From NCBI RefSeq assembly GCF_018350175.1, contig NC_058385.1, positions 82,708,001 through 82,772,000 of the forward strand: a DNA stretch of 64,000 bases. The letters run 5' to 3'. The stretch is from Felis catus (lineage: Eukaryota). A program made the translations under genes and the position numbers. Within the stretch, counting starts at the first letter, position 1. Each line of letters opens with the position of its first letter. This document shows, one piece after another, positions 2,288 through 58,966 of this stretch. The notes under the pieces were generated by a model, which was not told the origin of the DNA, made no database searches, and saw only the letters and a list, made by a program, of their open reading frames with translations.

Positions 2288-2300
2288 CTGACCTCACAAT
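2288..2300 (+). promoter_or_regulatory. CRE-like element CTGACCTCACAAT upstream of SPATC1
   Basis: TGACCTCA is one mismatch from TGACGTCA; about 140 bp upstream of the ATG; identical copy upstream of the paralogous exon at 42120-42132. Confidence 0.6.
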
Positions 2301-14400: not shown

Positions 14401-17400
14401 AATGAAATCTTGCCCATTTGCAATAACACGGATGAAGCTAGAGAGTATTGTTCTAAGCAAGATAAGTCTGTCAGAGAAAGACAATGTGATTTCACTCACG
14501 TGTGGAATTGAAGAAAAAAACCAAACGAGCAAATGGGGGGGAAGAAAGAAAGAAAGAGAGAAACAGAGAGGCAAAGCGAGAAACAGACTCTGAACTCCAG
14601 AGAAGACACTGCAGGTCACCAGAGGGGAGGGGAGTGGGGGCGGGTGAGCTAGGTGAGGGGGGGGATGAAGGGGTGCACTTGTGATGTATGGAAGGGACGG
14701 TTTTCTATGTTATTTTCCAAAATCTAATATTACACTGTTAAATGACTGGAATTGAAATTGAAAACTTAATAAAAAAAAAGATTTAGGTAGAATTAGTTGT
14801 CATTGGGAAAATTGGCCAATTTGATGCCCATCGATCAAGGAGGCTCCACATGGTGGCAGGTGGGGGAGCTGGGAACCGCAGCGGCCACGGAGCAGCGTCC
14901 TCAGGGAAGGGTGCAGCTGGAAGGCCGCGTGGGGGCCCAGCCGGACGACAAGTGGACGGAAGGACACGGGCGACAGAGAAGGCCCAGGAGCAAAGAACGG
15001 GGTTTACAGTTTTAAGTGATTGAAGGAGAATCAGGAATACTATTTCTGGACATGCGGAAAGTACCCAAAACTCAAACATCAGCGTCTCTGAATAAAGTTT
15101 TATTGGTACAGACCCACCGTATTTGTTTCCGTCACGTCTGGGGCCACGCTGGTACCACAGCCCCCAAGGTGATTGGTCACAAGAGAGACCGGACGCAAAA
15201 CTGGCCGTATTCACCACCAGCCCTTAATAGACGAGGTCCGTCTACCCCTGATCTATAAACTCACGGAGAGAGTCTTCAAGGCAACGCGGAGCTTTTCATC
15301 ACGCCTAATGGCAGGATGACAGGACTATGACGGTTCCTAATCTTTCTTTGGGCTTTTCCGTAGCTCCATCCTTTCTCTGTAGTGAGCGAGCGCGTGACGC
15401 CTAACGACAACCGCCTAACTGGCAGTTTTCACACTGCGCCCTCCCCCAGCTTCCGTGCCCCCAGGGGTCTTCTCCCCCCAAACAGTGGTCGTTCAAGGGC
15501 TCGCTCCTCAGGAACCCAAGGGAAATGGGCTGTCTGCCCCCCCACCCCCGCCCAGGGATCCAGGAGTATGAAGCAGCCGTGTCTGGGCCAGCCCACCCTC
15601 TTGAACCTGCATTCGCTATTCCCGGGGACGCTGCGGGCAGGCACGGACGAGCCACCATCGGTGCCGCTGAGGCTCTGTGCCTGTCCCAGCTCTGGCCTCC
15701 CTGAGCGTCCCACACCTGGTGCAGCTCTGCTGTCCCCACAAGGACAGTGGTCAGGAGTCCCGGGCCCACTGCTCCCCACCAGGGAATGGATGGGTCCACT
15801 TGGCCACCTGGGGGACCACCGCCGGGAGACCCTCCCCAGTGAGGGGTCAGTAGCTCAGTGCAGTGGGCACATGGAGGGCTGGGCAGCTGTGGAAGGTCCC
15901 TGTGACTTGGTGGGGGGGCAGGTGTGCAGAGAAGTGAGCCCAGGGGGACGAGGCTGCCTCAGAGGACGGAGAAGAAGCGGGCCAGACCCTCCGGTGGGAT
16001 CTGCCGAGTTGCCCCACAGACCCCGTCGGCGGGGGAGGGTCATCGTCCGGCCACCCAAGAGACAGGGGCAGAGCTGGTCAGCTCGTCAGAGGCAGGCAGG
16101 CACCCGGGCCCTCCCCCAGTGGGCCCGCCGGGGTCTCAGTGCTTTCTCTGTGTCCCCCAGGTGTCTTCCTGCCCCTGTCCCCGGCAGCAGCACATGAGCC
16201 CGTCCTGGAAGAAGTGGGCGTTGTGGCTCTGGCACCCCTGGCCGACATGCTAAGCAGCCCGCAGCCCGGCCCCACGGCAGACCCCATCGTGAGCCCCCTG
16301 ACGGGCCCCCTCAGCACCTTGCTGCCCGGTCCAGGGCCCATGTCACAGAGCGGCCTGTTCTCCAGCATCCTGACCGGCCCCCTGACTCCGAGCAGCCCCC
16401 TGGCCGGGCCCCTGGCAGTGGCCCCAGGAGGCACACTGGGCAGCTCCATGGGCACGGTCTCCACCGGCCCTCTGACTCCGAGCAGCACCCTGGCCGGCCT
16501 CATGGCAGTGTCCCCAAGAGGCACACTGGGAAGCTCCATGGGCCTGCCCTCCACCGGCCCCCCGACTCCGAGCAGCCCCCTGGCCGGGCCCCTGGCAGTG
16601 GCCCCAGGAGACACACTGGGCAGCTCCATGGGCACGGCCTCCACCGGCCCCCTGACCCCGAGCAGCCCCCTGATGGCACCTACGACAGGCACAGTGGCCA
16701 TCTCTCTGAGCAGCCCTCTGCTCACCTCCACAGCTGCCCCTCTAGGTGTTTCTCAGAACCTTGTGGCCAACCCCGTGAGCAATCTGGTGCTGCCGGCGGC
16801 CCAGAGGGTGCGGCTGACAGAGCCGTTCCGAGGATGCCCATCTGGACCCCCTCCCTCCGCTGGAGCAGGGCCTGCTGGCACCACCAAAGGTACCCGGTGC
16901 AGGGGGAGGGACAGGAGGGCACCCCCAGCCCCCGCCAGGCCGGTCCTGGGTCCTGACTTGCTCTGACCCTCCTTCTCTCCTCTCTGCCCCACAACGTCAC
17001 TAGTCCCAATGTCCACTGAGCACCCACAGCCGACCCAGAACCTGGAGCCTCTCGGCGTGACATTTGTGGGCGTGCCCTTGCACACCTCTACCCCCATGGA
17101 GACCAAGGGCGCAGCTGGCCCCGGGACGGCCTTCTCCTTCAGCACCTCGGACGCCCGGGCCCAGCCCGGTGCCCCCCAGGGACAAGCAGTTCCTGCCCCT
17201 GCCCCCGTCGCCCCTACTGCTGCCCCCCAAGCTACCACCGACTACGCCTCCCCCGGCACCACCCACGTTGCCCAGTGCCCACCCCCGTCCCCCACCCGGG
17301 CACACTGCCCCCCCACCCAGCCCTCATCCACCCCCCACTCCCCTCCTCGAAATCCCCATTCCCCACCTCGAACCTCGTCCTCCCCGGCTTCAGTCAACGA

Positions 17401-20400
17401 CCCCCGGGGTCCACGCGGCACAGAAACATCTCGGAAAAGCATGGTGGAGTTGGAACGGAAGCTAGCCCACAGGAAGATCAGCAAGTTTCCGGACAGCCCC
17501 CGAGGTCTGTGACACAAGTGCAGCACCACCAGTTGGGCGGGGTCTCCCCCGCTGCCCCTGTGGCCCTCCCTGGCCCCGGCCTGGGCCGAGGACCACTCCC
17601 TCCACCCCCTGTTGTCCTCAGAGTCGAGGCAGCTGGCCTGGGAGCGGCTGGTGGGGGAGATCGCCTTCCAGCTGGACCGCAGGATCCTGTCCAGTATCTT
17701 CCCCGAGCGCGTGCGCCTGTACGGCTTCACCGTCTCCAACATCCCAGAGAAGATCATCCAGGTGCCCGGTGCCCGGTTCCCCCTCACCACCAGAGGCCCT
17801 GTCCCTGTCACCCGTTAGGGTTGGGGGGGGGTGCGGGCCTTGGAGGAGCCGCTGGGGGGCCCTGCGCGCCAGCCTGGCCAAGCCCATCAGAGTCCGCGGG
17901 CACCCTGTGGTGGAGGAGGCATGGCGTTCAGCCCCAGTGGCCAAAAGGCGTCCAGGGCACTGGGAGCCTTGGAAGACACTGGGAGGGGAGCCGTCACGGG
18001 GTGTGGGCTGTGCCTGGCTGGATGCCCAGAGGAGGCTGTCCAGAACGATCGATCGCCTGTGCCTCCTCTCCCACCAGCGCGCCAACTCTGGCTGGGCCCC
18101 CACGCCGGGGGACGGGAGAGGCGAGCCTTTGGGGCTTTCCTTGGGAAATAGGCCTCTGTTCCTGGCCACCTTCTCTCCAGCGTTTTTATCTGTAGACTAT
18201 AGACCTGGTGTGTGATCGGCAGGAATAGCTCAGGGCTACTGTGGGCTCATCTGAGTCCCGGTTTGAGCTCACCTTTTCCTTTGGTGTGTGTCTCCTTTGG
18301 TTCGGTTTTTAATTTTAATGTGGTCAGAATGATCTACCTTTCCCTTTGTTTGTACTTTTCACGACTCCCTTAAAGCTAGAGCGGTAGAGGGCTGGGCCCA
18401 GCCCTGAATCCATCCCGCTTACCCCCCACCCCCCCCAGCCCCATGTGTGTGGGCTCTCCAACCGCCGCTCTGACTGTCCCCAGCCCATGCTGTCCTCCTT
18501 GGTGCAGTGACAGAGCCCGGCACCTCTCTTCTTCCAGATTGTTTCAGCTCCTCTGGGCCTCTCGCTCAGTGTGAATTTTAGGAGCACCCGTCAAGCTCCA
18601 GGAAAAACCTCATTCAAGTATTTGGTTTTGCATCACTTCCCAGATTGAACAGGGGGACGTTTCACGTCTTTACGGCGTCGGTTGTTCTGATACCCCTGCC
18701 ATTTCTGCTGCCCATGTCAGTGGGGTCCACCGTGGTCACGTTTGGTCTGAGGGTCCTTGATGCACAGCCAGGACCCCCGCCGCCAAGGCTGGGTCTCAAG
18801 TGCAGACTGGCCATGGCTAGTTAGCAACTGGCAAACCACACGGGCGTAAGCACAATATTTACGTCTCTACAGTGTTGCAGCTGGTATCCAGTTGGCGAAG
18901 AGGACATTGGATTACAATGTCTGGTTTAAAGTGTGGTAGAGCTTTCCCACTGTTTGAAACCCACCTTTAGACGGAAGGTGATAAAGACGTATCACCGTTG
19001 ACACGGGACTCTGCCCTGAGTCCGCTGTGCGAGCCCTCTGGTCCCCGGCCCCTCTCCACTTAGCGGGAGCCAGCAGTTCTGCCCAGGACTCCACAGTCAC
19101 AGCACCAGCCGGTAACTCCTAGAGGAGAGGCAGGAAGATGAGGGCGGGATGTACCGAAGGCACTTTTCTCCGGCGTCTGAGGAAGTCAAGGAGCTCGGTG
19201 CCCCCTGGGCCAGTGCTTGTGGGGGAGGGGCTGTGGCTGGCACCACTCATTCCGTCCCCAGTCCCGGAGCCATTGGCCCCATTCACCTTCCATCAGCAAT
19301 GACCAGTGCTGCCAGGGTCCTACACTTGTGCCCAAGCTCCTGAGAAGCGCCCTGCCGAACCCACCCGCACAGACGTTGTCTTCGGGCTCTGACACCCCCC
19401 AGCTGGCCCGCCGCAGGGTGACCCTGTCTGGTTCCACCCGAGGAGCACGAACGCTCTCAAGGCCATCCATCCTGCCTGCTGGCCCGGCCCATTTGTTGAT
19501 TCCTATCAGGATCCAATTCCACTTTGCCTAGACTTTTATTTCCTTTCCTGAAAACATCTTGTTTTTCTGCGCGTTGAACTCCAGTGTTGGTCGTTGTTAG
19601 AATCCCTAAATTCTATCCAGACCCACCACCCCTGGTCAAACCTGGTGTCCGAACCTGGCTCGTTTGCTTCACGGATGCTGGATAGTTTGACGACTGACAA
19701 GTTTCAATAGAGCCCCGTTGCCGAATGAGGACTTGTTGACTGTTTTCAGTGAATCTGGTCATCTGTTTTATAAGTTCACAGTCAGCTGTGCCATCTTTTA
19801 AACTCAACTAAAAGTTGTTCCGGTGCCCAGACCTGTCACCTCTTCTCCCCAGCTGCAAACATCTTCTGCTCCAGGTGGGGGTGGGGTGCTCTGAGTACCT
19901 TCCTTTCAGCTTGCAATCACAGCAGACCTGAGCCCAGCACCCGTGTGAGGGTCACGGAGGCACCTCATGGCTGTGTCCAGGTGGGTCCTGGGCCCCCTAG
20001 TGCTCTCTGGAGCCCCACGCACTGGCCTGCTGACAACAGTTGTGGTGTTTGCATAATGGTTTGTTTCCAGCTACCACGCCAAACTCTTGTTCTGGTTCTA
20101 ATAGCCTGTATATCATCTTGGCTTTTCTATGTAGACGGTCATATTGTACAGTGTTTACAAGAAGCAGATAATACAGCAACCTCATCCTGTTTCTGGCTTG
20201 ACTGCAAACACACACGTCAAGTCTGTCCATTAAGTACAATGTGTGTCCAGGCTTTTTGCCAAATCTTCTTCAGTCACAGTTCTTGGTTGCAGATAACAGA
20301 ATCAACACTAGCTGATGTAAACAGAAAGAGCTTTATTATACTTGTTTAGGTGAGGACACAAAACTGGGCACAGAAGTTGGTATGGCTGCCCCTGAAGAAC

Positions 20401-23400: not shown

Positions 23401-24390
23401 GAAAGGACAGGGGACATTCTCGGAGAAAGTGACGCCTCAGCAGCTCATCCCAGCAGGTTAGGAACCAGCAGGCGGGCATCCAGGAATGGTTGGAAGGGGA
23501 TGAGCAGGGCCAGAGTGGGGACCTTGCAGGTCAGGCCTGGCCCCAAGAGGTGGGACGTGTAGGAGGGCCTCAGGCAAGAGACCCCATCTACTTCAGACCT
23601 GACATTCTGTGGGCCTGGGGGCAGCTGCACGTGTGACAGAGACGTAATGCGCAGGACTCGGTGAAAATGAAATACAGGGCTCTCTGTTCAAACCTATAAA
23701 GAACTTCAAGATGGCTACAGCAGGACATTGAGCTGAGTGTGGGCCCTTCTGAGCCGGGGCCCTGAGTGAATGTCCAGGTCACATGCCCGAGAGGCAACGG
23801 CAGGAGTGGGGAGGAGGGGCCGCTCTCCTGGCGAGATGCCGCGGGACGCAGTCACTGCCCGGTTGGAAGGCACAGGCGGTAAAGAAGCGGGTGGAGACCC
23901 GCCGGGCTGCTGCCAGTCCCCAGACCTCTCTCCCAGGGCCTCCAGGACACCTCCCTCCAGCACATCGCCACAGCCACGCCCCTCAGCCGCACCTGCCCCT
24001 CTCTTGCCTTTGTGGCGGTGGGAGCAGGAGGGGCCCTGACGGCCGCCGCTCTCCCCTCAGGCCTCCCTGAGCCCCAGCGACCACAAGCTGGATGAAGAGC
24101 TGTGCCAGACACTCACGCAGCGCTACGTAAGCATCATGAACCGGCTGCAGAGCCTGGGCTACGACGGGCGCGTGCACCCGGCGCTCACCGAGCAGCTGGT
24201 GAACGCCTACGGGATCCTGCGTGAGAGGCCAGAGCTGGCCGCGTCCGAGGGCGGCTCCTACACCGTGGACTTCCTGCAGCGCGTGCTGGTGGAGACCGTG
24301 CACCCCAGCATGCTCACCGACGCCCTGCTGCTGCTCTCCTGCCTCAACCAGCTGGCGCATGACGATGGCAAGCCTATGTTCATCTGGTGA
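2438..24390 (+). CDS. SPATC1: Speriolin (spermatogenesis and centriole associated 1), 5 coding exons, 635 aa
   Basis: Exons 2438-2645, 16161-16889, 17004-17504, 17622-17761, 24061-24390; all GT-AG, phases 1,1,1,0, total 1908 nt. N-terminus [34 protein letters not shown]; C-terminal domain [17 protein letters not shown]...[10 protein letters not shown]; ATTAAA at 24443-24448. Confidence 0.95.
5240..5760 (-). mobile_element. Ancient LINE-2 fragment
   Basis: Degenerate L2-like motifs (gtgatgtcacagaagccaagg, gtgtcaacag...gctgaagagtccagg). Confidence 0.45.
7211..7555. repeat. GC-box minisatellite of variant 16-18 bp units
   Basis: Recurring GGCCCCGCC core followed by CCATGAG, CAGTGCTCT or TCGTGAC. 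Confidence 0.85.
7757..7971 (-). mobile_element. Can-SINE
   Basis: Reverse-complement SINE ending actgagccacccaggtgtccc. Confidence 0.88.
8290..9110 (-). mobile_element. LINE-1 3' end fragments flanking a (TTTG)n microsatellite at about 8703-8742
   Basis: ttaaattccatatgtgagtgaaatc...tccatccgcgtccttgcaaacggcaagatt; cttcaggtgtaggatataatgactca. Confidence 0.7.
9363..9583 (-). mobile_element. Can-SINE (SINEC_Fc-like)
   Basis: Near-consensus reverse SINE, TSD ctggat. Confidence 0.93.
10113..10257. other. Assembly gap (others at 48228-48400, 48763-48920, 48927-49121)
   Basis: Runs of N, all inside L1 sequence. Confidence 0.99.
10459..10660 (-). mobile_element. Can-SINE
   Basis: Reverse SINE with (GA)n. 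Confidence 0.88.
11392..11600 (+). mobile_element. Can-SINE
   Basis: ggggcgtctggggggctcagtcagtt head, (CT)n, A tail. Confidence 0.9.
11633..11848 (-). mobile_element. Can-SINE, tail-to-tail with the previous SINE
   Basis: Reverse SINE ending gagccacccaggggcccc. Confidence 0.9.
12200..13150 (-). mobile_element. LINE-2 3' portion, CpG-enriched
   Basis: gaggacctcaccgaggaggtcac...ctccaggccgagggagcag...gaggtcagagaggtgacaggccagatcatggagggcc are typical L2 motifs. Confidence 0.6.
13990..14780 (+). mobile_element. Carnivore LINE-1 3' end
   Basis: gtgggaatgcaaactggtgcagc...gatgaatggatgaagaag...A tail. Confidence 0.85.
14960..15250. mobile_element. hAT-Charlie DNA transposon, MER58-like
   Basis: aataaagttttattggtacagacccac core; terminal ...ctacccctg. 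Confidence 0.6.
16373..16671 (+). repeat. Coding tandem repeat, 90-bp (30-aa) unit x3.3, in SPATC1 exon 2
   Basis: Units start at 16373, 16463, 16553 and 16643 (partial); first unit [30 protein letters not shown]. Confidence 0.95.
20820..21016 (-). mobile_element. Can-SINE
   Basis: Reverse SINE ending gagccccccaggcgcccc. Confidence 0.88.
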
Positions 24391-36500: not shown

Positions 36501-38177
36501 ACAGCACCTGCACGTCCTGTGGGAGAGCGGCAGCCAGTAAGGGGCCGGGCAGGCAGGGGTGGGGCGGGCGGAGCAGGCCGGCAGGGGGCCTCACCTTGAG
36601 CTGGCCCCGGAAGCCACGGCGGAAACCCTGCACGTAACGCCGGATGGTGGGGGTAAGGTAGGCGTCGGCACAGGCCGTGTGCCCCCGAGGCACGATGCGC
36701 ACCATGGGCATGGTGTCCGAGGACAGTGCCACGTGGGTGAAGCCCAGCTCCCGGGCCAGTGCGCCCACCTGCTGCTCATGCTGGGCCCACCTGTAACGAC
36801 GACCCCACGGCGCTTCGCCTCTTGCCCACGGCCTCCGGCCCACCGCCCAGAGCCCCGGCCGAGCCCCGCTCACGTGTAGGAGTGCATGAGCACCACGGCC
36901 AGGCTGCGGACACCTCGGGACAGGAGTGCCTCCAGCTTCCCACGCAGAGCCCCAAGGTCCACAGGCTGTCGCACCTCCAGCAGGTCCCCCGTGCGGCCTG
37001 CCAGGAGGCCCGTTACCATCCGTCAAAGGCCCACCCTGCTGCCCCCGTGCCCCCAGCCCTGAGGCACCCGCACCTTTGACAGGTGTCCCTGCACCTGGCT
37101 CCCCGCGATACAGCACCACGCGCTCGTCCACCTCCAGCACCTCTTCGTACAGCACCTCAGGCATGGGCACGGCCTGGGGACAGGCAGAGGCTCAGAGGAC
37201 ACCCAGGCCCGAGGGTCCTTGCTGGGGTCCTGCGCGGGTGGGGCAGTGCGGGCGAGGGGATGTGTCCCGGCAGTCCAGTCCATAGGCCCAGGAGACACAG
37301 ACGGGGCCAGCCCCAGCAAGGCCCCCCCACCCCCAAGGAGTGGCTCTCTGCCCCCAGGCACCTGAGTGCAGCCAACTGCCACCCCCGCAAGGGCAGCTCC
37401 CTGGAGGAGCCCAGCAGTAGGGGTGGGGGTAGGGGAGTGGGAGAGTGGAGGTGGCTCCTACCCCTCACCCCGAACAGTATGTCTTGGGGGTGCTCCACAC
37501 CCAGGATCCAGGACAGGGCATGGTGACAGACAGGAGCAAGACGTTGTGACCACTCTGAGGGCTTGGGGGACAGAGTGCCTGCTAGGAGTGTCTGGAACCT
37601 TCTCTCCGCCTATAAGCTGCTAGCCTGGGGCCAACACTGACCCTTCCAAGGGCTGCCTTCCCGAGGGGCCAAGGCATCCCTGGGAAACCATGAGCAGCTG
37701 CACGACGCAGCCACCAGCTGGAGTGGGTGCGCTCACCAGGTCAAAGAGGTCCTCTCGGGCCTGGGTGCCCACGTGCAGCAGGTCTCGGAAGCCACGCGTC
37801 ACCAGCAGCGCCACCCGCTCCCCCCGCCGCTCCAGCAACGCGTTGGTGGCCACCGTGGTGCCCATGCGGATGCTGGCAATGCGGCTGGTGTCCAGCGGCT
37901 GGTCCCGCGGCAACACCACGCCTCCTTCCTGGGAACCACAGGGTCCAGTGTCAGGCCCCGGTCCCAGGTCCCTCCCCAGCCCGCCCCTCTGCCCTGCCCT
38001 GGCCACCTGCTCCAGGATGCGGCGGATGCCCTCAGTAGGGGCGTCTGCATAGTTGGCGGGGTCCTCTGAGAGCAGCTTCAAGACCCTCACTTGCCCCCCG
38101 GGGCACTGGGCAAAGACATCTGTGAAGGTGCCTCCACGGTCGATGGCGAAATGGAAACGCCCCTCGGGGCTGCCCAT
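28905..38177 (-). CDS. OPLAH: 5-oxoprolinase (ATP-hydrolysing), 26 coding exons, 1288 aa
   Basis: Exons (minus): 38177-38007, 37928-37737, 37173-37074, 36997-36874, 36790-36595, 36516-36351, 36237-36099, 36003-35936, 35796-35531, 35393-35281, 35193-35023, 34835-34698, 34611-34473, 34352-34240, 34011-33860, 33195-33035, 32951-32850, 32767-32593, 31061-30877, 30751-30605, 30510-30376, 30235-30086, 29994-29837, 29755-29595, 29402-29305, 29051-28905 = 3867 nt. [20 protein letters not shown]...[10 protein letters not shown]; AATAAA (minus) at 28888-28883. Confidence 0.97.
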
Positions 38178-38349
38178 GGTGACAGGGCTGGAGTCCAGCA
38201 CTGACTCTTCAGCCGGCAGTCCTGGGAGAACTGGACGGAGACAGCAGATCAGGCGACAGGCCCGGGGGTCACCCGCGGCTTGGTAGCCTTGGGCAGAGCC
38301 GGGCTGAGGAGAGCAAGGTGGGGCGGGGGGGGGGGGGGGGGGGGTCGGA

Positions 38350-39250
38350 GGAGGCGCCCGGGGCCGAGCCCGGGGCTGCAGGCCCAGCTCAGAGCGCCGC
38401 CTGAGGCGCGGCCGCAGCCGGGCAGGTGGGGGCGCCAGACCTAACGCCCCCCGTTACCCTGTTCTCAGGGCCCCGGCTTGCGGCGCAAATCCCCGGACCC
38501 GCCAGAGGCGGAGGCGCCCCGGGGAGCCCACGGGCTGGTGGGTCTGGGCTCCTATAGCACGAGGAGGCACGGGGGCTGGGGGCAGGTGACTTCCCCAGTC
38601 GCTCGACCTTGGGGCCCAGGCCGAGTGGGACAGGGGGCACGGGGCGGGGCCTGCGCCGGGGAGGGGGCGGGGCTCGCGGCCGGGTTGGGGGCGGGGGCGG
38701 GGAGGCGGGGAGAAGCGGGGCGCTGGAGGGTCCGGGTGCGGGGCCCACCTGGCGGGTCGGCTCCCAGGCGCTCGCGGTCCGCTCGGGCCGCGCTCCCTCC
38801 CGGCCCTGCCCGCCGCACCCCCCCCTCCCCCCGCCCGGAAGCGGGGCCCGCCCCCCGCCCGACCGGTCCCGCCGCCCACGGCCCTCCGGGTTGCGTCAGG
38901 TTCGGCTCGCCGGGAGCCGCCTCCCTCCTCCGCCGGGAGCCACGCCGGGGGACCGCGGGGCGCGGGGCCGAGCTGGGCCAGGGGCGGCTCCGTGCTGGCG
39001 CGTCCCCGGCCGCCGGCCACCTCGGTTCAGCCGGCCACTCGAGGTGCCCCGGGGAAGGCGGAGCAGGCCACCCTCCGAAGAAGTAAGAGCCCAGACGAGC
39101 TCGGACTGCACCCTGGCGCGGGGCAGTCACGCCGTGAGGGACGGGGCTGGGGAGGGGGGTCGTGGAGGGGCCCCGGGCAAGGGCCCCTCCGTAGCCGTCA
39201 ACCCCGCTGCTGCCCGCCCAGGGCCGGCCTTGCCACAGCCCAGGCTGGGC
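38350..39250 (-). promoter_or_regulatory. OPLAH: OPLAH CpG-island promoter with probable non-coding exon 1 (donor after 38749)
   Basis: Very CpG-dense with GC boxes; donor ccgccag|gtgggc at 38749/38748; second candidate donor cagg|gtaacg at 38458/38457; exon 2 acceptor ttctcccag| at 38222. Confidence 0.7.
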
Positions 39251-40769
39251 GCCCCGGGACCCTCACAACATCAGGCCGATGTCCCCAGAAGCCATGGCCG
39301 GTGCCCTGACGATGAGGCGAAGCGTGCCCCACCCTGGCCTGTCTCCCCACAGGCAGAAGGTGTCCAGGCTCGGAGTGGACACCAACCGTGCAGGGCCTGG
39401 AGCAGACCGTTTAGAGCTCCCAGGGGGCAATAGTGGGGATGGGGCGAGGGGGGAGACCCAAGCAGAGGGAACAGCGGGTGAAGGGGGCTTCACCCAAGGT
39501 GCCAGGCCAGATGGCCAAACAGGCAGGGGCACCCACCCACGCGCCCCAGACTTCCCCCTCCCCTGGGAGCCTTGCTGGCGCTGGAGGCCTGCTTGGTCCC
39601 TGGAGGTGAGAGCGAGGTGGGGCCGCACCCCGGGGAAGCAGCGGGGGCTCCCTTCTGACCAGTGCCTCTGCAGCCTCTGTGCACGTGGTGGGGGGTGAGG
39701 GGTTTGGAAAGAACTGCACCAAGAAAGACACAAGAGACTCAGCGACTCAGGGCAGTGTCTGTAGCCTCCGACCCCAACTCACGCCTTCTGACGGTGGCCC
39801 GTGGCCTCTCCCACCAGCGCAGGCTCCGTCGGTCTCTCCCCACCTCCAGCCCTGCTTGGACCTAGGACTTAAGCTGCCCTGCGCGTGTGCCGCGGAGGAT
39901 GGGCTGTGACCGTGCCCAGATGACTGTGCCCCCGGCGGCAGGTGCCAGCCAAGGTACTGACCCCAGACCCCCACCCCCTTGACCTCCCTGTCACCTTCCC
40001 CATCCCTCACGTCCAGCCGGATGCCTAGACCATCACTGTGGCCACCGCACAGGAACTTCTACCCTCCCCGGCTCTGAGCTAACCACGAGATGGCGGTCGG
40101 CGGCCCCACTCCAGACAGGACCCCCGCCTGCAGCCCCCACCGTGTCTCCATTCACGCCTCCACAGCAGGTGCATCCAGCCCACTCTCCCCCATCACTGGG
40201 TGACTGTCCCACCTGCCCGTCTCCGCCAACTCCCCCACGTGGCGTTTTCGTCCTGATGCTCAGCTGAGAGTCCATCCGGAGAGGCTTCCAACAACCCAGC
40301 CACACCACCACCCCTGGGGTGCGTACTCAGCCAGGCTGCCTGTGGTCTCAGCCAGGCCTCCTCACTGCATCAGCCTGGCCGCCCCCACGCCCGTGTTCAG
40401 CCCACGGCTGGTGACCCTCAGCGCCCAACCGTGTCTTCTAGAGGCCCCGCCCCCACGCCCCTCCAGCGGCACCGCAAGCGCTCTGCTCCTCAGGGTGCAC
40501 GTCCGTGGAAAGGCCCCCTGCCACCTCCACTAGCCTCCAGGCTCACAAATCACATCAGGCAAGACCAGAGAAGCCCCCTGAGCCGCCCCAGTGCCCAGGC
40601 CTCTGGCCTCCCTGTGCGTCCACCCGTTCCCCACTTCTGTCTCTGGGAAGCCCCTTCTGCATGGGGTCCTGACCCGCCTCACCGACTCCCTCCTGCCAGC
40701 CTCCTTTACCGCATCTTCTTGACGCGTGTGTCCTGAGACGTTCCCCTCTGCTCTGCCCTGAACTGTGTC

Positions 40770-41050
40770 CTGCCTAACTTCCTGTACTGAAGCCTACCGG
40801 ACCTTAGGGGGGTGACAAAGTCATGAGGATGGGTCCCCATGATGGCATTAGTGCCCTTATAACAAGAGACGGAAGGGGTTGTCTCCAGAATGTGAGGACA
40901 CAGCCGGACAGTGGCCAACTCTCAGCCAGCAAGAGAGCCTCGCCAAGAACCGTGCCGGCGCCCTGATCTCCGACTTCCAGCCTCCAGAACTGTGGGAAGT
41001 GGATTGTTGAAGTCGTCAGCCTGTGGTGTTTTCATGGAGCAGCCCACACT
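40770..41050 (+). mobile_element. MaLR LTR, MLT1A-like
   Basis: gtcatgaggatgggtccccatgatggcattagtgcccttataa...gacttccagcctccagaactgtg. Confidence 0.75.
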
Positions 41051-41817
41051 CCCTGAACCGCCTCTCCAGAGACCATTGTCTGCCTGTTAACATCTCCGGG
41101 CCCTCAGAAGCAGGGATGGGACACTGTGCCAGGACTGACATGGCCCACACGCTCCCTGGCCACTTGTATCTCCCGGTGGATCTGCACAGCCAGAGGCTTC
41201 CGGGAAGCGTGGTGCCTGTCCCCATGAGAGCTGGGGTCCCCTCAGCCTGCCCGTGCCAGGGGGAGCGCCCCAGTTGCACTGCTCAAACCCTAGGAACTGC
41301 CTTCAAGTGCCACTTTCCCACCAGCACGCCCAACCCGCCCAAGTATATCCAGAGCCCCCGGCACTGTTCACTCCCCCTTCCAGCCAAGCCTGTGATTTCT
41401 CACCAGGAGAACGACCCCGACCTAGAAGACCCTCCTGGTCCTCATCTGCTCTCCACTCCACCAACGCTGGCCTCAGCACTGTGCCTCAACACGCTCGACC
41501 CGCTGCCACCTCAGGGCCTTTGCACGGACCATTCCCTCAGCTCTACCCCAGCCTTGTGGCCCCTTCACTTTGGTCCAGTCCTGCACCAATGTCACTTTCT
41601 CGGAGATGTTACTTTCTCCCCGCTGCCTTCCTAAAGAGGCCCCGGCCCCCGTATCACTCCTCAGCACCTTCCGCACCTGACGAGCCATCGCCCCACGGGA
41701 GCAGGGACCCCCCGCCCCCCCTGCCCCTGCCGCTTTCCCCTGTCTTGGCACAAGCTTGAACGAGTGAAGCCTCGTGGGCATCTGAGAAGAGCCCCCGCGG
41801 GCCCTGGCGCTCCTCAC

Positions 41818-42052
41818 CTCTTTCGGCATCCTTGAACTTGATGGTTCTGCGCCGGGGCAGCCGGGGGCTGGTGGCCACCTCGGCCAGGAGCCCGGAGCCA
41901 CAGAAGCCCAGGCCTCTGCCCCGGGTCTGGAGCACCAGCTTCAGCTCCTGGTTCTCCTGGATGAGCTGCACAAGCCGTCGCAACTCTTCGTTCTCCTGGG
42001 CCAGCCGCTGGATCTCCCGCCGCAGACCCTCGTAGCTGCTGAGGGGGGACAT
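41818..42052 (-). CDS. Speriolin N-terminal-domain paralogous exon; putative alternative coding first exon of OPLAH
   Basis: MSPLSSYEGLRREIQRLAQENEELRRLVQLIQENQELKLVLQTRGRGLG...RRRTIKFKDAER; ungapped 29/49 identity to SPATC1 exon 1; strong donor GAG|GTGAGG in phase 1, the same phase as SPATC1 exon 1. Confidence 0.8.
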
Positions 42053-42119
42053 GCCCGGCAGCAGGGGGGGGGGGCAGCTGCCAGCAGCTGTCGCCTGGCC
42101 AGGAGTAGCGGACCCCGTC

Positions 42120-42217
42120 ATTGTGAGGTCAGCGGCCGCCCCTGCCCCCGGGCCTCAGCCGCATTCCGGGGGTCAGAGCCAAGGCCCCTTGAGCAGGGCA
42201 CACCTGACCTCTGACCT
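42120..42217 (-). promoter_or_regulatory. Putative germ-cell promoter of the speriolin-like exon
   Basis: CTGACCTCACAAT at 42132-42120 (minus), identical to 2288-2300; perfect DR1 AGGTCAgAGGTCA at 42217-42205. Confidence 0.55.
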
Positions 42218-42844
42218 CTGGTCCCTGAGGGCCAAATGACTAGAGGAGCCCAGACCTGCCGAGAGCCTGGAGTCCTTCTGGGATGCCCCTCTTGGAGGAC
42301 AGAAGCTTCTTTATGCCAGCCTGACCTGACACGGAGGTGCTGCAGGGAGTGGGAGTAAAAGACCCAGGCCTCCCCATCCCCCGTCTGGCTACCCACTGGC
42401 CCCCAGCTGCAGCATCCCCCCCTGCCCGTGCCAGCTCACGGGGCTGGGCGACGGCTCGGTCCCCGAGGTGGTCACACAGCCAGCAGGACATCTCAAGGGG
42501 CCAGGACAGTGGCTGTTTGAGCTGCCCCGTGGGAGGGGCGCCTCTGGCCTAGAAATAGCAGGAGCTGCACAGCGAGGTGGGGGGGGGGTGGTGGGTCAGG
42601 GTCCGGGGGATGCGGCTAAGTCGGCAAGTGCATCAGGACGGGGCTGGAGGCACAGAGATGGGGCAGGGATGGCAGGGGGCAGCTGTGTCAGGTGGAGGGC
42701 AGGACGCCCGGAAAGTATGCTATACCCCACAGGCCCCACGGCACGCTCCCCCACCTGCAGACCCCAAGGCACGCCCCCGCCGCAGGGGAACCACCCCAAA
42801 GAGTAACCACCCAGGTTACATTTTAGAGCATATGAAGGACTTCC

Positions 42845-43076
42845 TTTTTTTTTTTTTTTTTAATTTTTTTTTTCAACGTTTATTTATTTTTGGGACAGAG
42901 AGAGACAGAGCATGAACGGGGGAGGGGCAGAGAGAGAGGGAGACACAGAATCGGAAACAGGCTGCAGGCTCTGAGCCATCAGCCCAGAGCCTGACGCGGG
43001 GCTCGAACTCACGGACCGCGAGATCGCGACCTGGCTGAAGTCGGACGCTTAACCGACTGCGCCACCCAGGCGCCCC
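42845..43076 (-). mobile_element. Young Can-SINE (SINEC_Fc-like) with TSD
   Basis: CpG-intact consensus; TSD aggacttcctt on both sides. Confidence 0.95.
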
Positions 43077-43519
43077 AGGACTTCCTTCTTTCATGCCATG
43101 TGCCCTCTACCGGCACAGCTCTCTGCCTCCGCTGTCGTTGTCTGTCCTTTCCTTGTATTATGATTGGCGTTTACTTCGCCATCATCTCCTGCCTGCTGAC
43201 CCCCTCAGCACAGTTGCCACTTGTAGACCCGAAGTCCTCCTGGGATTTGCACGCCCTTCCCCGGCTGCTTCAGTGTGGCCTGGCCAGCTCCGGGGGTCTT
43301 CACAGAGCAGACTGCGGGGGAGGCTGACAGCAGTGCCCCAGGGGACGGGGTGGGACCCGTGCTCAATCTCAAAGGAAATGGTGACAATTTTAATAGTTCC
43401 TATAACTAGGAAGTGTCCTGATTCTGACCATGATGGAGTAGAGTATTTCCGAAAGGACTAGACATCTTACCTCAAGGGCGTGACAGGCTCAGGGCAGTCG
43501 CGGCCGGGACTGGTCTGTG

Positions 43520-44234: not shown

Positions 44235-47208
44235 AGGGGCACCTGGGTGGCTCAGTCGGTTAAGCATCTGACTCTTGATATTGGCTCAGGTCATGATCTC
44301 GCGGTTCTTGGGTTTGAGTCCCCTGTTGGGCTCTGTGCTGACAGCTCAGAGCCTAGAGCCTGCTTCAGATTCTGTGTCTCCCTCTCTCTCTCTGCCCCTT
44401 CCCTACTCACACTTTGTCTCTCTGTGTCTCTCAAAAATAAACATTGAAAAAAATGAAAAAAAGAAAAAAAACCTCACACACAGACTGACTCACCCCAGGA
44501 CCCAGTGCAAAAACACCAGCTTGAAAAGCACGTAGACCATATATGAATGAGACCCATTTACTAATCCTAATTTTTTTTTCAGAGAGGAAGGAACTTGTTT
44601 GTTGAGACTCTGTCCAGAGACAGAGCTACCACAGGCACCATTTTTGTGATCTGATTCTAACTCATTAGCACCAGAGAGCACAGATTGCTGAGGGTCCTGC
44701 CCACCCACCACCACCATGACCACTCCACAGCTGGGCCAGGTGAGAGCCCCACCCACCTCTAAGCCACAGTGTGACCCCACCATAGCAGGTGGGCTCCTGT
44801 CACTCACAGAGAGGTCGCTGCTTGAGCACCTGGCTCTGGTGGCCAGAGGGGATAGTGTTTCTGAATCCCACAGGACATCTTCTACACAAAACCATTCCTT
44901 CAAGACCGGGGAAGGCAGCTGATTTGCCTAATACATGGAAACAAATACAGAGAGTCAAGTCAAATGAGGAGACAGAGGAATATGTTCCCAGTGAGTGAAC
45001 AAAGCAAAACCTTATCTGTTAAATGAAACAGATAAGCAATCTGATTTCAAAGTAATGGTCACAAAGATGCTCAGCAAACTCAGGAGAAGAATGGGTGAGA
45101 CAGCGCAAACTTCAACACAAAGATAAAAAATACACTAAAGTACAAAAGAGAAGTCACAGAAAGAAGAATACAACAACTAAACTGAAAAATATCCTAGAGG
45201 GGCTCACAGAAGACTGTATGAAGCAGAAGAATGGAACAGTGAGCCGGAAGATAAAACAATGGAACCCAGACACAGCAGCAAAAAGAAAAAAAGATTTTTA
45301 AAAAGTGAAGATAACTTGAGGGAACTTTGGGACAACACCAAGCAAAATAACATTTGTGTTATGAGGATCCCAGAAGAAGAGAAAGACAGATCCAGGAAAC
45401 TTATCTGAAGAAATAAGAAATAATAATCTCAAACCTTCCCCAACCTGGGGAAGGAAACAGACATCCAGGCCTAGGAATCCCAGAAAGTTCCAAATAAGGG
45501 GAACCTGAAGAGATCCACACCAAGGCACACTATAATCAAAGTGGTAGAGGTTAAAGAGGGAATCTTAAAAGCAGCAAGAAAAAGCAACGTGTTACTTATA
45601 AGGGAAACCCCATAAGGCTCTCAGCAGATTTTTCAGCAGAAACATTGGAGGTCAGAAGGGAGTGACATGACATATTCAAAGTGCTGAAAGGAGAGAACGT
45701 CCAGCCAAGCATTCTCTCTCCAGCAAGGTTATCGTTCAGAATTGAAGGGACGAGTAAGAGTTTTTCAGATAAGGGGCACCTGGGTGGCTCAGTCGGTTAA
45801 GCATCAGACTCTTGATTTGGGCTCCGGTCGTGATCTCACAGTTTGTGAAATGGACACAAAGAGGCCAAAGCACATTGGCCTCTGAGCTGACAGCGTGGAG
45901 CCTGCTTGGGGTTCTCTCTGTTCCTCTCTCTCTCTGCCTCTCCCCACTTGTGCTCTCTCTCTCTCAAAATAAATAAACTTTAAGAAAAGAGTTTCCCAGA
46001 TAAGGAAAAACTAAGGGAGTTCATCACCACTAAACTGGACTTATGATAATCTTTTTCAGTTTATTTATTTATTTTGAGAGAAAGAGAGGGGGAGGGGGTG
46101 GAGAGAGAGAATCCCCAGCAGGCTCTGCACTGTCAGCACAGAGCCCGATATGGGGCTTGAACCCAGAACCATGAAATCATGACCTGAGTTGAAAACATGA
46201 GTCGGATGCTCAACTGACTGAGCCACCGTGAGCCCCTAGACGTATGATAAATGTTAAAGGGAGTGCTTAAAACTGAAAAGAAATAGCACTAATTAATAAT
46301 AAGAAAACATATGAAAGTAAAAATCTCACTGGAGATGTACATGTAGAGTAAAGATACTGGATCAATCACTTATAAAGCAAGTATGAAGGTTAAAAGACGA
46401 AAGTAATACGGAATAAAACTACAATAATTAGTTAAGGGATACAAAAAATAGAAAAGATGTAAAATGTGACATCAAAAATACAAAACATGGGGGCACCTGG
46501 CTGGTTCAGTCCATGGAGCATGTGACTCTTGATTTTGGGGTTGTAAATTCAAGCCCCATGTTGGGTATAGAGATTACTTAAAAATAAAACTTGGGGGCAC
46601 CTGGGTGGCTCAGCTGGTTGAGCATCCAAGTTCGGCTCAGGCCATGATCTCATGGTTTGTGGGTTTGAGCCCCACATCTGGCTTTTTCCTGACAGCACAG
46701 AGTCTGCTTTAGATTCTCTGTCTTCCTCTCTCTCTGCCCCTTCGCCGCTCACATGTTCTCTCTCTCTGTCTCTCAAAAATAAAAATAAACATTAAAAATG
46801 TTTAAAAATAGGGACACCTGGGTGGCAACTCTCAATCTTGGGGTTATAAGTTTGAGCCCCACATTGGGTATAGAGATTACTGAAAATCTTTTTTAAAAAT
46901 CAAACAACATGCAACTGAACAAACAATGGGTCATCAAATAAGTCAATGAAGATATAAAAAAAAAAAACACCTAGAGACAAATGAAAACAGAGATGTAACA
47001 TGTCAGGGGCACATGGGTGGCTCAGTCAGTTAAGCATCTGACTTCGGCTCAGGTCATCATCTCACATTTCGTGGGTTCAAGCCCCGCATTGGGCTCCATG
47101 CTGACAGTGTGCAGTCTGCTTGGGATTCTCTCTCCCTCTCTCTCTCTCTCTGCCCCTCCCTAACTCGCACTTTCTCTCTCTCTCAAAATAAATAAACTTG
47201 AAAAAAAA
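44235..47208. mobile_element. Cluster of Can-SINEs nested in the L1
   Basis: SINEs at about 44235-44470 (+), 45773-45985 (+), 46052-46236 (-), 46489-46590 (+), 46593-46808 (+), 46811-46890 (+), 47006-47208 (+). Confidence 0.88.
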
Positions 47209-50028
47209 TGTAACATGCCAAAAATCTATGAATACAGCAAAATCAGTTCTAAGAGGGAAGTTCATAGCAGTACAGGCCTACCTCAAGAAGAAAAATCTCA
47301 AACAAACAATCTAACTTTACACCTAAAAGAACTAGAAAAAGAACAAGCAAAGCCTAAAGTTAGTTGAAGGAAGGAAATAATAAAGATAAGAGCAGAAATA
47401 AATAAAGACTAAAAAGAGAATAGAAAAGATTAATGGTTCTTTGAAAAGATAAAAACCTACAAACCTTTAGCTAGACTAACCAAGAAAAAAAAAAAAGATA
47501 GAGGGATCAAATAAAGACAGGCAGAAAGAGAAGTTACAATTGATACCACAGAAATACAAAGAATCGTAAGAAACTACTATGAACAATTAAATGTCAACAA
47601 ATTGGACAACCTAGAAGAAATAGGTAAACTCTTAGAAACATACAATTTTCTAAGACTGAATCAGGAAGAAATAGAAAATCTGGATATACTTATTTCTAGT
47701 AAGGAGATTGAATCAGTAATCAGAAACCTCCCAACAAACAAAAGTCCAAGACTAGATGTTTTTGCTGGTGAATTCTTCCACACCACGCCCCCAACTGGTG
47801 AATTCTATCAAACATAAAAAAAAAAAAAAATTTAATACCTATCCTTCTCAAACTCTTCCAAAGAATTGAAGAAGAGAGAACACTTTGAAACTCCTTTTAC
47901 AAGGCTAGCATTACCCTGATACCAAAAACAGACAAGGACACAACAACAACAACAAAAAAGAAAATTACAGGCCAATATTTTTTTATAATCATAGATACAA
48001 TAATCCTCAATAAAATATCAACAAACTGAATTAAACACTACATTACAAGGATCATACACCATGATTAAGTAGGATTTATTTATTTGTTCAACATCCACAA
48101 ATCAATCAACATGATACACTACATTGACAAAAGGAAGAAGAAAATTCATATGATCATCTCAATACATGTGAAAAATGCATTTGGCAAAATTCAACATCCA
48201 CTTATGATCAAAATTCTCAACAAATTGNNNNNNNNNNNNNNNNNNNNNNNNNNNNNNNNNNNNNNNNNNNNNNNNNNNNNNNNNNNNNNNNNNNNNNNNN
48301 NNNNNNNNNNNNNNNNNNNNNNNNNNNNNNNNNNNNNNNNNNNNNNNNNNNNNNNNNNNNNNNNNNNNNNNNNNNNNNNNNNNNNNNNNNNNNNNNNNNN
48401 AGGCAGGATAAGTAAATAAAAAGCATCTAAATTGGAAATAAAGAGGTAAAAATGTCATTATTTGAAGATGATGTAATACTATATAGAAAACTCTAAATTC
48501 TCCACCAAAAACCTATTAGAACTAGTCAACACATTCAATAAGGTTGTAGGATACAAACTCAATTTACAGAAATCTGTGACATTTCTTTTTTGTGTGTGGT
48601 ATTTCTATATACCAATAATTACCTATAAAAATGTAAATTAAGAAAGCAATCCTACTTACAATTGCATCAAAAAGAATAAAATACCTAGAAATAAGTTTAA
48701 CCAAGGAAGTGAAATCTGAACACTGAAGACTATGAGACACTGATGACAGAAAATTGAAAACANNNNNNNNNNNNNNNNNNNNNNNNNNNNNNNNNNNNNN
48801 NNNNNNNNNNNNNNNNNNNNNNNNNNNNNNNNNNNNNNNNNNNNNNNNNNNNNNNNNNNNNNNNNNNNNNNNNNNNNNNNNNNNNNNNNNNNNNNNNNNN
48901 NNNNNNNNNNNNNNNNNNNNGTAGGANNNNNNNNNNNNNNNNNNNNNNNNNNNNNNNNNNNNNNNNNNNNNNNNNNNNNNNNNNNNNNNNNNNNNNNNNN
49001 NNNNNNNNNNNNNNNNNNNNNNNNNNNNNNNNNNNNNNNNNNNNNNNNNNNNNNNNNNNNNNNNNNNNNNNNNNNNNNNNNNNNNNNNNNNNNNNNNNNN
49101 NNNNNNNNNNNNNNNNNNNNNTATGAAGAAGCCAAGAACATACAATGGAGAAAGGACGATCTCTTCAATAAATGGTGCTGGGAAAACTGGACAGCCGCAT
49201 GCAAAGGAATGAAACTTGACCACTATCTTACACTATACACAAAATTAACTCAAAATGAACTAAAGGCTTGAGTATAAGACCTGAAACCATAAAATTCCTA
49301 GGCGAAAACAAAGGCAGTCAGCTCCTTGACACTGGTCTTAGCAATATATTTGTGGATCTGACTCCAAAGAAAGGGAAACAAAAAGCAAACATAAACAAAT
49401 GGGAAACTAAAAAGCTTCTGCACCGCAAAGGAAACCAGAACCAGAAAGAAAAGGTATCGACTGAACAGAAGATACTTGCAGGTCCTACATCTAATAAGGG
49501 CTTAATATTCAAATATATAAAGAACTCATAAAAAGTAAGGAACTCATACAACTCAACAATTTAAAAAACAACCTGATTTAAAAATGGGCAGAGGATCTGA
49601 ATAGATATTTTTCCAAAGACAAACAGGTGGCCGACGGACACGTGAAAAGACGTCCAACATCGCTAATTATTGGGGAAGTGCAAACCAAAAGCACGATGAG
49701 ACCGACACCGCCTCTCACCTGTTAGAATGGCTAGAAATCACAAGTGTTGGCCAAGATGTGGGAAAAAAGACGACCCTCGCGCACTGTTGGTGGGAGTGGA
49801 AATTGGTGTAGACACTGTGGAAAACAGTATGGAAGTTCCTCAAAAAATTAAGAGTAGAATTGCCGCATGACCCAGCCATTCCACTTCTGGACGCTTTTCT
49901 GAAGAGAACAAAAACAATAATTCAAAAAAGATATCTGCACCCTTATGTGCATAGCAGCATTACTTACAGTCATCAAGATATAGAAACAACCCAAGTGTCC
50001 ATCAGTGGATGAATGGATAAAGAGGATG

Positions 50029-56918: not shown

Positions 56919-58966
56919 ATGGCGGGCCTGGAGCTGCTGTCGGATCAGGGCTACCGGGTAGACGGACGGCGCGCCGGGGAGCTGCGCAAGATCCAGGCGC
57001 GGATGGGCGTGTTCGCGCAGGCCGACGGCTCGGCCTACATCGAGCAAGGCAACACCAAGGCGCTGGCGGTGGTCTACGGGCCGCACGAGGCGAGTGGGCG
57101 TGCGCGAGCTGGGCGGGGTGCGCGGGGCCTCCAGGCTGAGCTGAAGATGCCGAGGCGACAGCCGTCGCGCGCCGCGTCCACCCAGCCCATCTTCAGGGCC
57201 GCCGCCGCTCGCTCGGCTCCAGAGCCAAAGTCCTGGCAGCGTGGTGCACCGTGGTCCCCGCCTTTCTCACCGGCCTCTCTCCCCTCCGCCCTGCCCTCCT
57301 CTTTGCTCTTCCTCAAAGCGCCCCCGGCTCTCCCGCGTTCGCGTCCTCTCTCTGCTCTCTACTCTGACGTCATCCCCCGGGTGACGCCTCCCCAGACCGC
57401 CTTCCTCACGTGGCAAGCCCCCTCCCCTACAACCACACACTTCCCTGCCTTTCGGTCACTTCAGACGGCAGTCTAACTCCGTGAGGACAGGGACTTTATT
57501 TTTATTTTTTAAAACATTTTTTTTTAACGTTTATTTATTTTTGAGACAGAGAGACAGAGCATGGACGGGGGAGGGGCAGAGAGAGAGGGAGACAGAATCG
57601 GAAGCAGGCTCCAGGCTCTGAGCCATGAGCCCAGAGCCCGACGCAGGGCTCGAACTCAACGGACCGCGAGATCGTGACCTGAGCTGAAGTCGGACGCTTA
57701 ACCGACTGAGCCACCCAGGCGCCCCGAAGGGACTTTAAATAAAATCCTGATTTTTTATTGCCTTGTCTCCGTTGCTGGAGAAGGGAAGACCACTGGGGTG
57801 GAAGCAAACACAGCACGTCCGCAGAGTGGAAAGGCTGCTGGTGGGAGGTGGGGGATTGCTCAAAGTGAGATTGAGGGCTTTCTAGGAAGGTGAGAACTCA
57901 CCGCTTCGCAGACCAGGGAAAGTATTTATGATTTTGTGTCACACGTGATGGGGAAGCTTTGGGAAGGCAGTACCATATGTGAGCGTGTAGAGGAGACAAA
58001 GTCAGACTTGATACTTGTGAATATACCGGCCCTGGCTACAAATGGAGAATGGGCTGGGAGGGGATGAGGCGAGGATGGAAACGGGGAGACCTGAGGGGGG
58101 ATGATGGCTTAGAGATGGGCCAAGTGGCCCTCCTGTGGGGCGTTTGAAGGTAAAGTGGCTGTGTTGTTGAGATGTTGGAAGAAGGAGGAGGGGTGGGAAG
58201 GAGCCTGAGGTCCGGGGCCTGAGCTAGAGGAAGGTGTAGTGCGAGCTGGCAGGAGTGAGGCTGGCTCATGTGTCCTTCCTCCCCTAGATCCGGGGCTCCC
58301 GGGCACGAGCCCTGCCTGACAGGGCCCTGGTGAACTGTCAGTATAGTTCTGCGACCTTCAGTACAGGCGAACGCAAGCGGCGACCACATGGGGACCGTAA
58401 GTCTTGTGAGATGGGCCTGCAGCTGCGTCAGACCTTCGAGGCGGCCATCCTTACACAGCTGCACCCACGCTCCCAGATCGATATCTATGTGCAGGTGAGC
58501 AGGCAGCAGCTATCCGCCTGGGGAGGGAGAGGGATGGGGTGGGGGTTGGGAGTCCGAGGTCAAGAGCCTGATACACTGATGCCGCTGGTGGGCGCGGTTC
58601 CTGCAGGTGCTGCAGGCCGACGGTGGGACCTACGCAGCTTGCGTGAACGCAGCCACGCTGGCAGTGCTGGACGCCGGGATACCCATGCGGGACTTCGTGT
58701 GCGCCTGCTCGGCTGGCTTTGTGGACAGCACGGCCCTGGCGGACCTCAGCCACGTGGAGGAGGCAGCTGGTGGCCCCCAGCTTGCCCTGGCCCTGCTGCC
58801 TGCCTCAGGCCAGCTTGCACTGCTTGAAATGGACGCCAGGCTGCACGAAGACCACCTGGAGCAGGTGCTGGAGGCTGCTGCCCGGGCTGCCCGTGACGTG
58901 CACACCCTGCTGGACCGTGTGGTTCGGCAGCATGTACGGGAGGCCTCCATTTTGCTAGGGGACTGA
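56919..58966 (+). CDS. EXOSC4: Exosome complex component RRP41, 3 exons, 245 aa
   Basis: Exons 56919-57089, 58288-58494, 58607-58966; MAGLELLSDQGYRVDGRR...ASILLGD; intron 1 donor GCGAGT; AATAAA at 58989-58994. Confidence 0.97.
57495..57725 (-). mobile_element. Young Can-SINE in EXOSC4 intron 1
   Basis: Consensus-like; TSD agggacttta. Confidence 0.94.

Follow-up and report, generated by a model that had tools for sequence, protein, structure and literature searches.

A conserved speriolin-type exon upstream of OPLAH and its proposed use as an alternative first exon

The locus described here raises the question of why a lone exon encoding a speriolin-type zipper lies upstream of OPLAH, the gene for 5-oxoprolinase, on the same strand, and what product it might contribute to. 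The exon and the gene lie in a stretch of 64,000 nucleotides (nt) from Felis catus (assembly GCF_018350175.1, contig NC_058385.1, positions 82,708,001 to 82,772,000 of the forward strand). This whole stretch is referred to as the window; coordinates are positions in it, and (+) and (−) denote its forward and reverse strands. A first-pass annotation, made from the sequence letters alone, had predicted that the exon is a captured alternative first exon that gives OPLAH a speriolin-like N-terminus. The analysis presented below partly supports this chimera: the exon is real, old, and selected, and its join to OPLAH exists as a deposited gene model in apes.

Results

The speriolin-type exon and its domain

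The speriolin-type exon, a putative alternative first exon, was located at 41818–42052 (−). Its frame is open from the ATG at 42052–42050 down to 41818, a length of 235 nt that holds 78 codons and one further base (phase 1), and it encodes a leucine zipper followed by a basic tail. At its end is a splice donor read from the sequence as GAG/GTGAGG (41812–41820, −; GT at 41817–41816), where the slash marks the exon boundary. The first-pass annotation had assigned the same limits, length, and donor, and sequence and translation agree with it. Its description of the exon as speriolin-like was also borne out: the peptide matched profile positions 1–60 of the Pfam domain Speriolin_N (PF15058) with 58.6 bits (E = 1.2e-15), relative to a curated cut-off of 27.9 bits. 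AlphaFold2 predicted one long helix for the peptide, covering residues 3–47, with predicted local distance difference test (pLDDT) values of 96–98 at residues 11–40 and a tail of low confidence. In the heptad-repeat helix of the exon, L10, L17, and L24 are invariant, as is N21, and I31 is largely conserved.

Selection on the exon

Conservation at the protein level was determined for 15 lineages. Mean pairwise identity was 95% for residues 1–40, 69% for residues 41–78, and 71% for the final 18 residues before the donor; for the 18 read-through residues past the donor it was 20%. Every intact sequence of the clade has the 78 codons with zero indels, gaps being found solely in one degenerate-looking open reading frame (ORF), P0014. 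Of the 15 lineages, 14 have GGT (Gly) as the first codon read through the donor, and nine continue with Glu (GGTGAG); thus, the GT of the donor is kept.

At the DNA level the felid exon was compared with that of a bovid contig (L001) from a metagenome scan, whose 96 translated codons give a product identical to the Bos mutus record. The two exons are 89.4% identical with 0 gaps; in the first 100 nt of the intron the identity is 35%. The 25 substitutions in the exon are distributed 6:5:14 by codon position, and the ratio of nonsynonymous to synonymous substitution rates (dN/dS) was 0.08–0.27, depending on the method. When 25 substitutions were placed at random, as few residues were changed without a stop in 17 of 20,000 cases. 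In a second felid, represented by an ORF from a public run (P0220), the 78 exon residues are 100% identical to those of the window. Because of the contrast in identity between exon and intron, the substitution pattern, and the conserved GT, we conclude from these comparisons that the exon is kept as protein-coding sequence under purifying selection, with a coding end that coincides with the splice donor.

Two further observations concern the sequence past the donor. The 54-residue read-through tail of P0220 has several differences from the window at 41654–41817 (−), an exon/intron contrast at short evolutionary distance. Among bovids, the frame of the read-through tail differs between the close relatives P0060 and P0003.

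A second in-frame ATG is present further upstream, at 42121. In L001 a 1-nt indel separates the position of this ATG from that of the exon ATG, and ATG 42121 is therefore not conserved as a start. A long poly-C tract at 42063–42075 (−) lies between the two ATGs; it is likely to be prone to length change, which fits the species difference in frame upstream of the exon ATG.

The join to OPLAH exon 2

OPLAH is convergent to SPATC1, the speriolin gene on the plus strand, and its ATG at 38177–38175 (−) was placed by sequence, alignments, and Pfam. From this canonical ATG, the coding part of exon 2 covers 38007–38177 (−); it matches Hydant_A_N (E = 1.2e-11) and aligns with two public OPLAH-type proteins, P0005 and P0093. 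Exon 2 is preceded by tandem acceptors at 38221–38232 (−). The AG at 38223–38222, in the context cag/G, starts the exon at 38221 and leaves a leader of 44 nt, and the frame joined in this way contains no stop. The AG at 38232–38231, in the context cag/TTCTCCCAG, starts the exon 9 nt further upstream, at 38230, and is likewise in frame; the resulting 53-nt leader (38178–38230, −) belongs to the 5' untranslated region (UTR) of the canonical mRNA, and the proposed isoform would translate it as a linker of 18 residues. The claim that the exon can be joined to exon 2 without a stop before ATG 38177 thus holds with either acceptor.

The extension of OPLAH is 96 residues via 38230 and 93 residues via 38221. 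The first-pass annotation had chosen 38221 and 93 residues. That acceptor is in frame, but in the models from apes and macaque exon 2 starts at the upstream one, residues 79–222 of P0005 aligning from 38231/38230. Because the ape model begins exon 2 at 38230, an extension of 96 residues is more likely than one of 93. Whichever acceptor is used, both in-frame ATGs precede OPLAH without an intervening stop, and for that reason translation of any such mRNA would by default give the extended protein.

The intron of the proposed isoform (38231–41817, −; 3.6 kb) holds the canonical OPLAH CpG-island promoter and the non-coding exon 1, whose probable position is about 38600–39100 (−), where the GC content is 0.82 and the observed/expected ratio (o/e) of CpG is 0.82. 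Just upstream of exon 2, OPLAH intron 1 contains a poly-C tract (38318–38345, −).

A join of this type has been deposited before. P0005 is the record "OPLAH isoform 5, partial [Pongo abelii]", which consists of the exon, the 18-residue leader, and OPLAH residues 1–158, with the Pfam architecture PF15058 plus PF05378; the exon at 42052–41819 is 86% identical to its residues 1–78. GenBank records of the fusion are PNJ07998.1 (Pongo abelii) and PNI46278.1 (Pan troglodytes), and a human record falls in the same cluster. Annotated OPLAH isoforms of apes already carry the N-terminus that the first-pass annotation had predicted. P0050–P0055, which belong to the ape cluster, are ordinary OPLAH N-terminal fragments. 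In a macaque protein, P0093 ("5-oxoprolinase-like isoform X3", Macaca mulatta), the exon 2 leader is entered in frame from another upstream exon, one that is not conserved; nothing in the window corresponds to residues 1–87 of P0093. Since P0093 joins the leader in frame, an independent second model also treats the leader as coding.

The exon has no speriolin C-terminal partner on the OPLAH side, as the first-pass annotation had noted. Searches by tblastn with SPATC1 and SPATC1L proteins gave matches only at 16160–17908 and 24058–24387 on the plus strand, of which the second alone is Speriolin_C (PF15059). Neither tblastn nor Pfam found Speriolin_C on the minus strand near 38–64 kb, and the nine minus-strand ORFs between the exon and OPLAH had no Pfam match; these interval searches left out 40831–40872 and the ORF at 40706–40918, the tblastn database being split around 40831–40872.

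Placement of the exon in the speriolin family

For comparison we took the paralogous exon 1 of SPATC1, located in the window at 2438–2641 (+), which matches Speriolin_N with 113.7 bits. In an exhaustive profile search the speriolin-type exon fell among short ORFs 69–87% identical to it, apart from SPATC1 (about 450–614 amino acids, aa) and SPATC1L (about 290–350 aa). A tree of the zipper region, built on 67 columns only and with the human peptide excluded, placed 44 exon-type sequences in one group with a Shimodaira–Hasegawa-like approximate likelihood ratio test (SH-aLRT) value of 91, beside a SPATC1 group (98) and SPATC1L-like sequences; the exon lies within neither the SPATC1 nor the SPATC1L clade. 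Identity to the neighboring SPATC1 exon 1 is 51–58%, with a synonymous divergence (dS) of about 0.8–1.1. Recent capture of SPATC1 exon 1 is ruled out by these values and by the separate clade, which leaves the word "captured" in the first-pass annotation doubtful. By the tree and the divergence values, the exon is a third, old Speriolin_N lineage beside SPATC1 and SPATC1L.

Records of the exon whose source is named come from Pongo, Pan, Tupaia, Bos, Bison, Delphinus, Artibeus, and Myotis; together with the present carnivore they represent at least five mammalian orders. One record from a JGI metagenome, P0234, is a mammalian copy of the exon labeled "cell shape-determining protein MreC" by its source; it is host DNA in the metagenome, mis-annotated as bacterial.

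The region upstream of the exon

The putative tissue-restricted promoter of the exon occupies 42053–42560 (−), which is conserved and CpG-poor. Over the 500 nt upstream of the exon, felid and bovid sequences are 60–66% identical, gaps included; the corresponding figure for the intron is 17–44%. The CpG o/e of this upstream region is 0.35, near that of the SPATC1 promoter (0.40), and that of the OPLAH CpG island is 0.82. A 13-mer, CTGACCTCACAAT, occurs only twice in the window, where 0.07 occurrences are expected: at 42120–42132 (−), upstream of the exon, and at 2288–2300 (+), in the SPATC1 promoter. It is also present, without change, at about 440–455 of bovid L001. In the ORFs of other mammals the 13-mer is translated in two frames, as DLTM or LTSQW, and because the reading frame differs across mammals we regard it as a conserved DNA element and not as coding sequence. 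It contains TGACCT, which is CRE-like and is also a nuclear-receptor half-site. These sequence features are in keeping with a promoter of restricted tissue range that is related to the SPATC1 promoter and may be active in spermatids. A scan for bacterial promoters and terminators, a type of scan not relevant to a mammal, found nothing.

Other features of the window

Besides exon 1, SPATC1 contributes a large exon at 16160–17908 (+), matched by tblastn with SPATC1 and SPATC1L proteins, and a Speriolin_C exon at 24058–24387 (+), found by tblastn and Pfam. At the other end of the window, an ORF with an RNase_PH domain (56919–57476, +; Pfam) is most likely an exon of EXOSC4, judged by that domain. 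Nine further long ORFs from 50 to 64 kb gave no recognizable coding domain by Pfam, so that a gene between the speriolin-type exon and EXOSC4, where SMPD5 lies in human, was not seen. Short interspersed elements at 42830–43080, 44260–44440, and 45800–45950 are presumably of carnivore, feliform type, by our own reading and not as a tool result. Runs of N occur inside AT-rich, repeat-like DNA at 10113–10257, 48228–48400, 48763–48920, and 48927–49121.

Discussion

The reading that we favor, by a modest measure, is that the exon works as an alternative first exon of OPLAH and gives a zipper-extended enzyme. In this proposal the zipper is encoded by one exon, which lies 3.3 kb upstream of the OPLAH CpG-island promoter on the same strand and would be driven by a CpG-poor promoter of its own. 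Transcription would start just downstream of the 13-mer. Splicing would connect the phase-1 donor at 41818 with an acceptor of OPLAH exon 2, most likely the one at 38230, and leave out the canonical non-coding exon 1. Translation from ATG 42052 would then cross what is otherwise 5' UTR and continue through the whole enzyme, adding about 96 N-terminal residues that comprise a four-heptad zipper (about residues 10–41), a Gly/Ser linker, and a conserved basic patch. In the present animal this junction would be used, and the full-length extended product would have 1380 residues. In favor of the proposal are the family membership and predicted fold of the exon, its separate clade, the breadth of its conservation and the end of that conservation at the donor, the deposited ape model, the in-frame leader of P0093, the lack of a stop between either ATG and OPLAH, and reports of OPLAH protein in sperm.

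Several observations weigh against this proposal. The open, in-frame join is real but is weak evidence and not significant alone: at the local base composition the chance that 17 codons remain open is 0.83, which multiplied by 1/3 for the phase gives about 0.28. The exon 2 leader is of equal length, without stop or indel, in ten lineages, but this sample is biased to open frames, since only open frames enter protein collections. The ape and human records, which probably all go back to one human transcript model projected onto ape assemblies, were counted as one piece of evidence. Public ORFs of 41–130, 43–136, and 140–444 residues included none that spans the junction except the ape model, and none of the 20 sequencing runs with exon words, from 8 studies, is recorded as RNA. 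Records from Tupaia and Bison also fuse the exon to OPLAH but skip many OPLAH exons, and these fusions look like ab initio artefacts. Annotations in Artibeus, Delphinus, and Myotis treat the exon as a short protein in its own right, "speriolin-like", that ends in a tail read through the donor. Finally, the bovid donor (L001 761–770) is GAG/GTGCAC, much weaker than the felid GTGAGG.

The last two points speak for a different interpretation, in which the exon is the sole coding exon of an independent small gene. Its product would be a zipper-only protein of about 95–135 residues, made from an unspliced or differently spliced mRNA, which, as a free protein, may pair with the zippers of SPATC1 and SPATC1L or compete with them; the join to OPLAH would then be a rare by-product. 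This interpretation has annotation on its side, in that the protein is called "speriolin-like" in Artibeus (96 aa) and Delphinus (119 aa) and "Speriolin" in Myotis brandtii (119 aa), with a Bos mutus record of 97 aa, and every public exon ORF except the ape model has a read-through tail. The number of such ORFs says nothing of RNA, however, because ORF callers yield read-through ORFs from any genomic DNA. The tails themselves are unconserved (20% identity), and their length and frame vary among close relatives (P0220 and the window; P0060 and P0003). Conservation ends exactly at the GT, which is kept in 14 of the 15 lineages, as would fit a used splice donor. We consider an independent gene unlikely, though the likeliest of the alternatives.

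It is also conceivable that the splice to OPLAH exon 2 is used mainly as a regulatory 5' end, for example to set the germ-cell dosage of OPLAH, and that the extended protein is unstable, scarce, or equal to the canonical one, the zipper having no localizing role. Alternative testis promoters are common, localization of OPLAH by a zipper is itself hypothetical, and a precedent is offered by the testis variant of PRDX4 (PRDX4t), which has an alternative exon 1 and is reported to be not absolutely required for mouse fertility (PMC7577974). A purely regulatory 5' end would not keep 78 indel-free codons, a dN/dS of 0.08–0.27, and near-invariant heptads over five orders, and we judge this explanation improbable. 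The view that the exon is a functionless remnant in decay, left by an inverted duplication of SPATC1 exon 1, and that its open frame and in-frame join are due to chance, is a formal rival only: the chance probability of the join (about 0.28) and the lack of a Speriolin_C partner exon by tblastn would suit it, but it is made highly implausible by the 89% nucleotide identity of the carnivore and bovid exons with a third-position excess beside an intron at 35%, by the 95% protein identity of the zipper across orders, and by a separate clade with short branches.

If the exon does serve as a first exon of OPLAH, its expression may be in male germ cells, as suggested by the SPATC1-like promoter and by the presence of OPLAH protein in human and bull sperm proteomes, in which the isoform is not specified (PMC9161277, PMC10629479). 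SPATC1 surrounds the sperm centriole, localizes to the centrosome and sperm neck, and binds Cdc20, and loss of SPATC1L leads to sperm decapitation (PMC8471410). One may speculate that the zipper of the extended enzyme dimerizes, or that it pairs with SPATC1 or SPATC1L at the sperm neck. A predicted complex of the SPATC1 exon-1 peptide with the speriolin-type exon peptide had a score of 0.10, relative to a mark of 0.34, and is evidence neither way; a protein atlas search gave no usable match. The most far-reaching version of the proposal is that placental mammals keep a third speriolin zipper solely as an N-terminus of OPLAH, which in spermatids pairs with SPATC1 or SPATC1L and anchors the enzyme at the sperm neck or centriole for local recycling of glutamate and glutathione. 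We regard this version as a long shot.

Should the extended enzyme exist, a housekeeping enzyme of the gamma-glutamyl cycle would have a second, deeply conserved form. This form would carry a domain that occurs otherwise in just two proteins of the sperm neck, and one of these, SPATC1L, is needed for head-tail integrity. Glutathione metabolism and the region of the sperm centriole would then be connected in a concrete and testable way, and the near-unchanged retention of a lone 78-codon exon in at least five mammalian orders would be explained. Even if the join proves rare, the exon would still call for an explanation as a conserved coding unit for a zipper alone. In either case its annotation is at present inconsistent, the same exon being filed under OPLAH in apes and as a separate "speriolin-like" gene in bat and dolphin.

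Comparison with known systems

The closest counterpart is the ape "OPLAH isoform 5". Like the felid arrangement, it has the Speriolin_N exon, the exon 2 leader, and then OPLAH Hydant_A_N in the same order on the same strand, and in the felid sequence a phase-1 donor and a leader of 53 or 44 nt likewise make one open frame into the OPLAH ATG. The ape records are partial (254 aa) and exist as annotation only, whereas the felid join is predicted from sequence. The fusion is thus not new as annotation: it is a deposited ape gene model that is not discussed in the papers found. No paper found joins speriolin with OPLAH or covers an alternative first exon, promoter, or testis isoform of OPLAH of such a kind.

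PRDX4t (PMC7577974) resembles the exon in that an upstream alternative exon 1 puts a new N-terminus on a redox- or glutathione-related enzyme. It differs in two respects. The somatic exon 1 of OPLAH is non-coding, and the speriolin-type exon would add a folded zipper domain, borrowed from the family of a neighboring gene, rather than replace a signal peptide; moreover, PRDX4t is testis-specific, whereas the testis specificity of the OPLAH exon is putative.

SPATC1 and SPATC1L share with the exon the N-terminal zipper domain PF15058, and SPATC1 resembles it further in that its first exon is likewise phase 1 and the 13-mer is common to both promoters. Unlike these two proteins, the exon has neither the central region nor the Speriolin_C domain and belongs to a separate clade. 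It has a conserved basic tail that is absent from SPATC1 exon 1, and its downstream partner is a metabolic enzyme.

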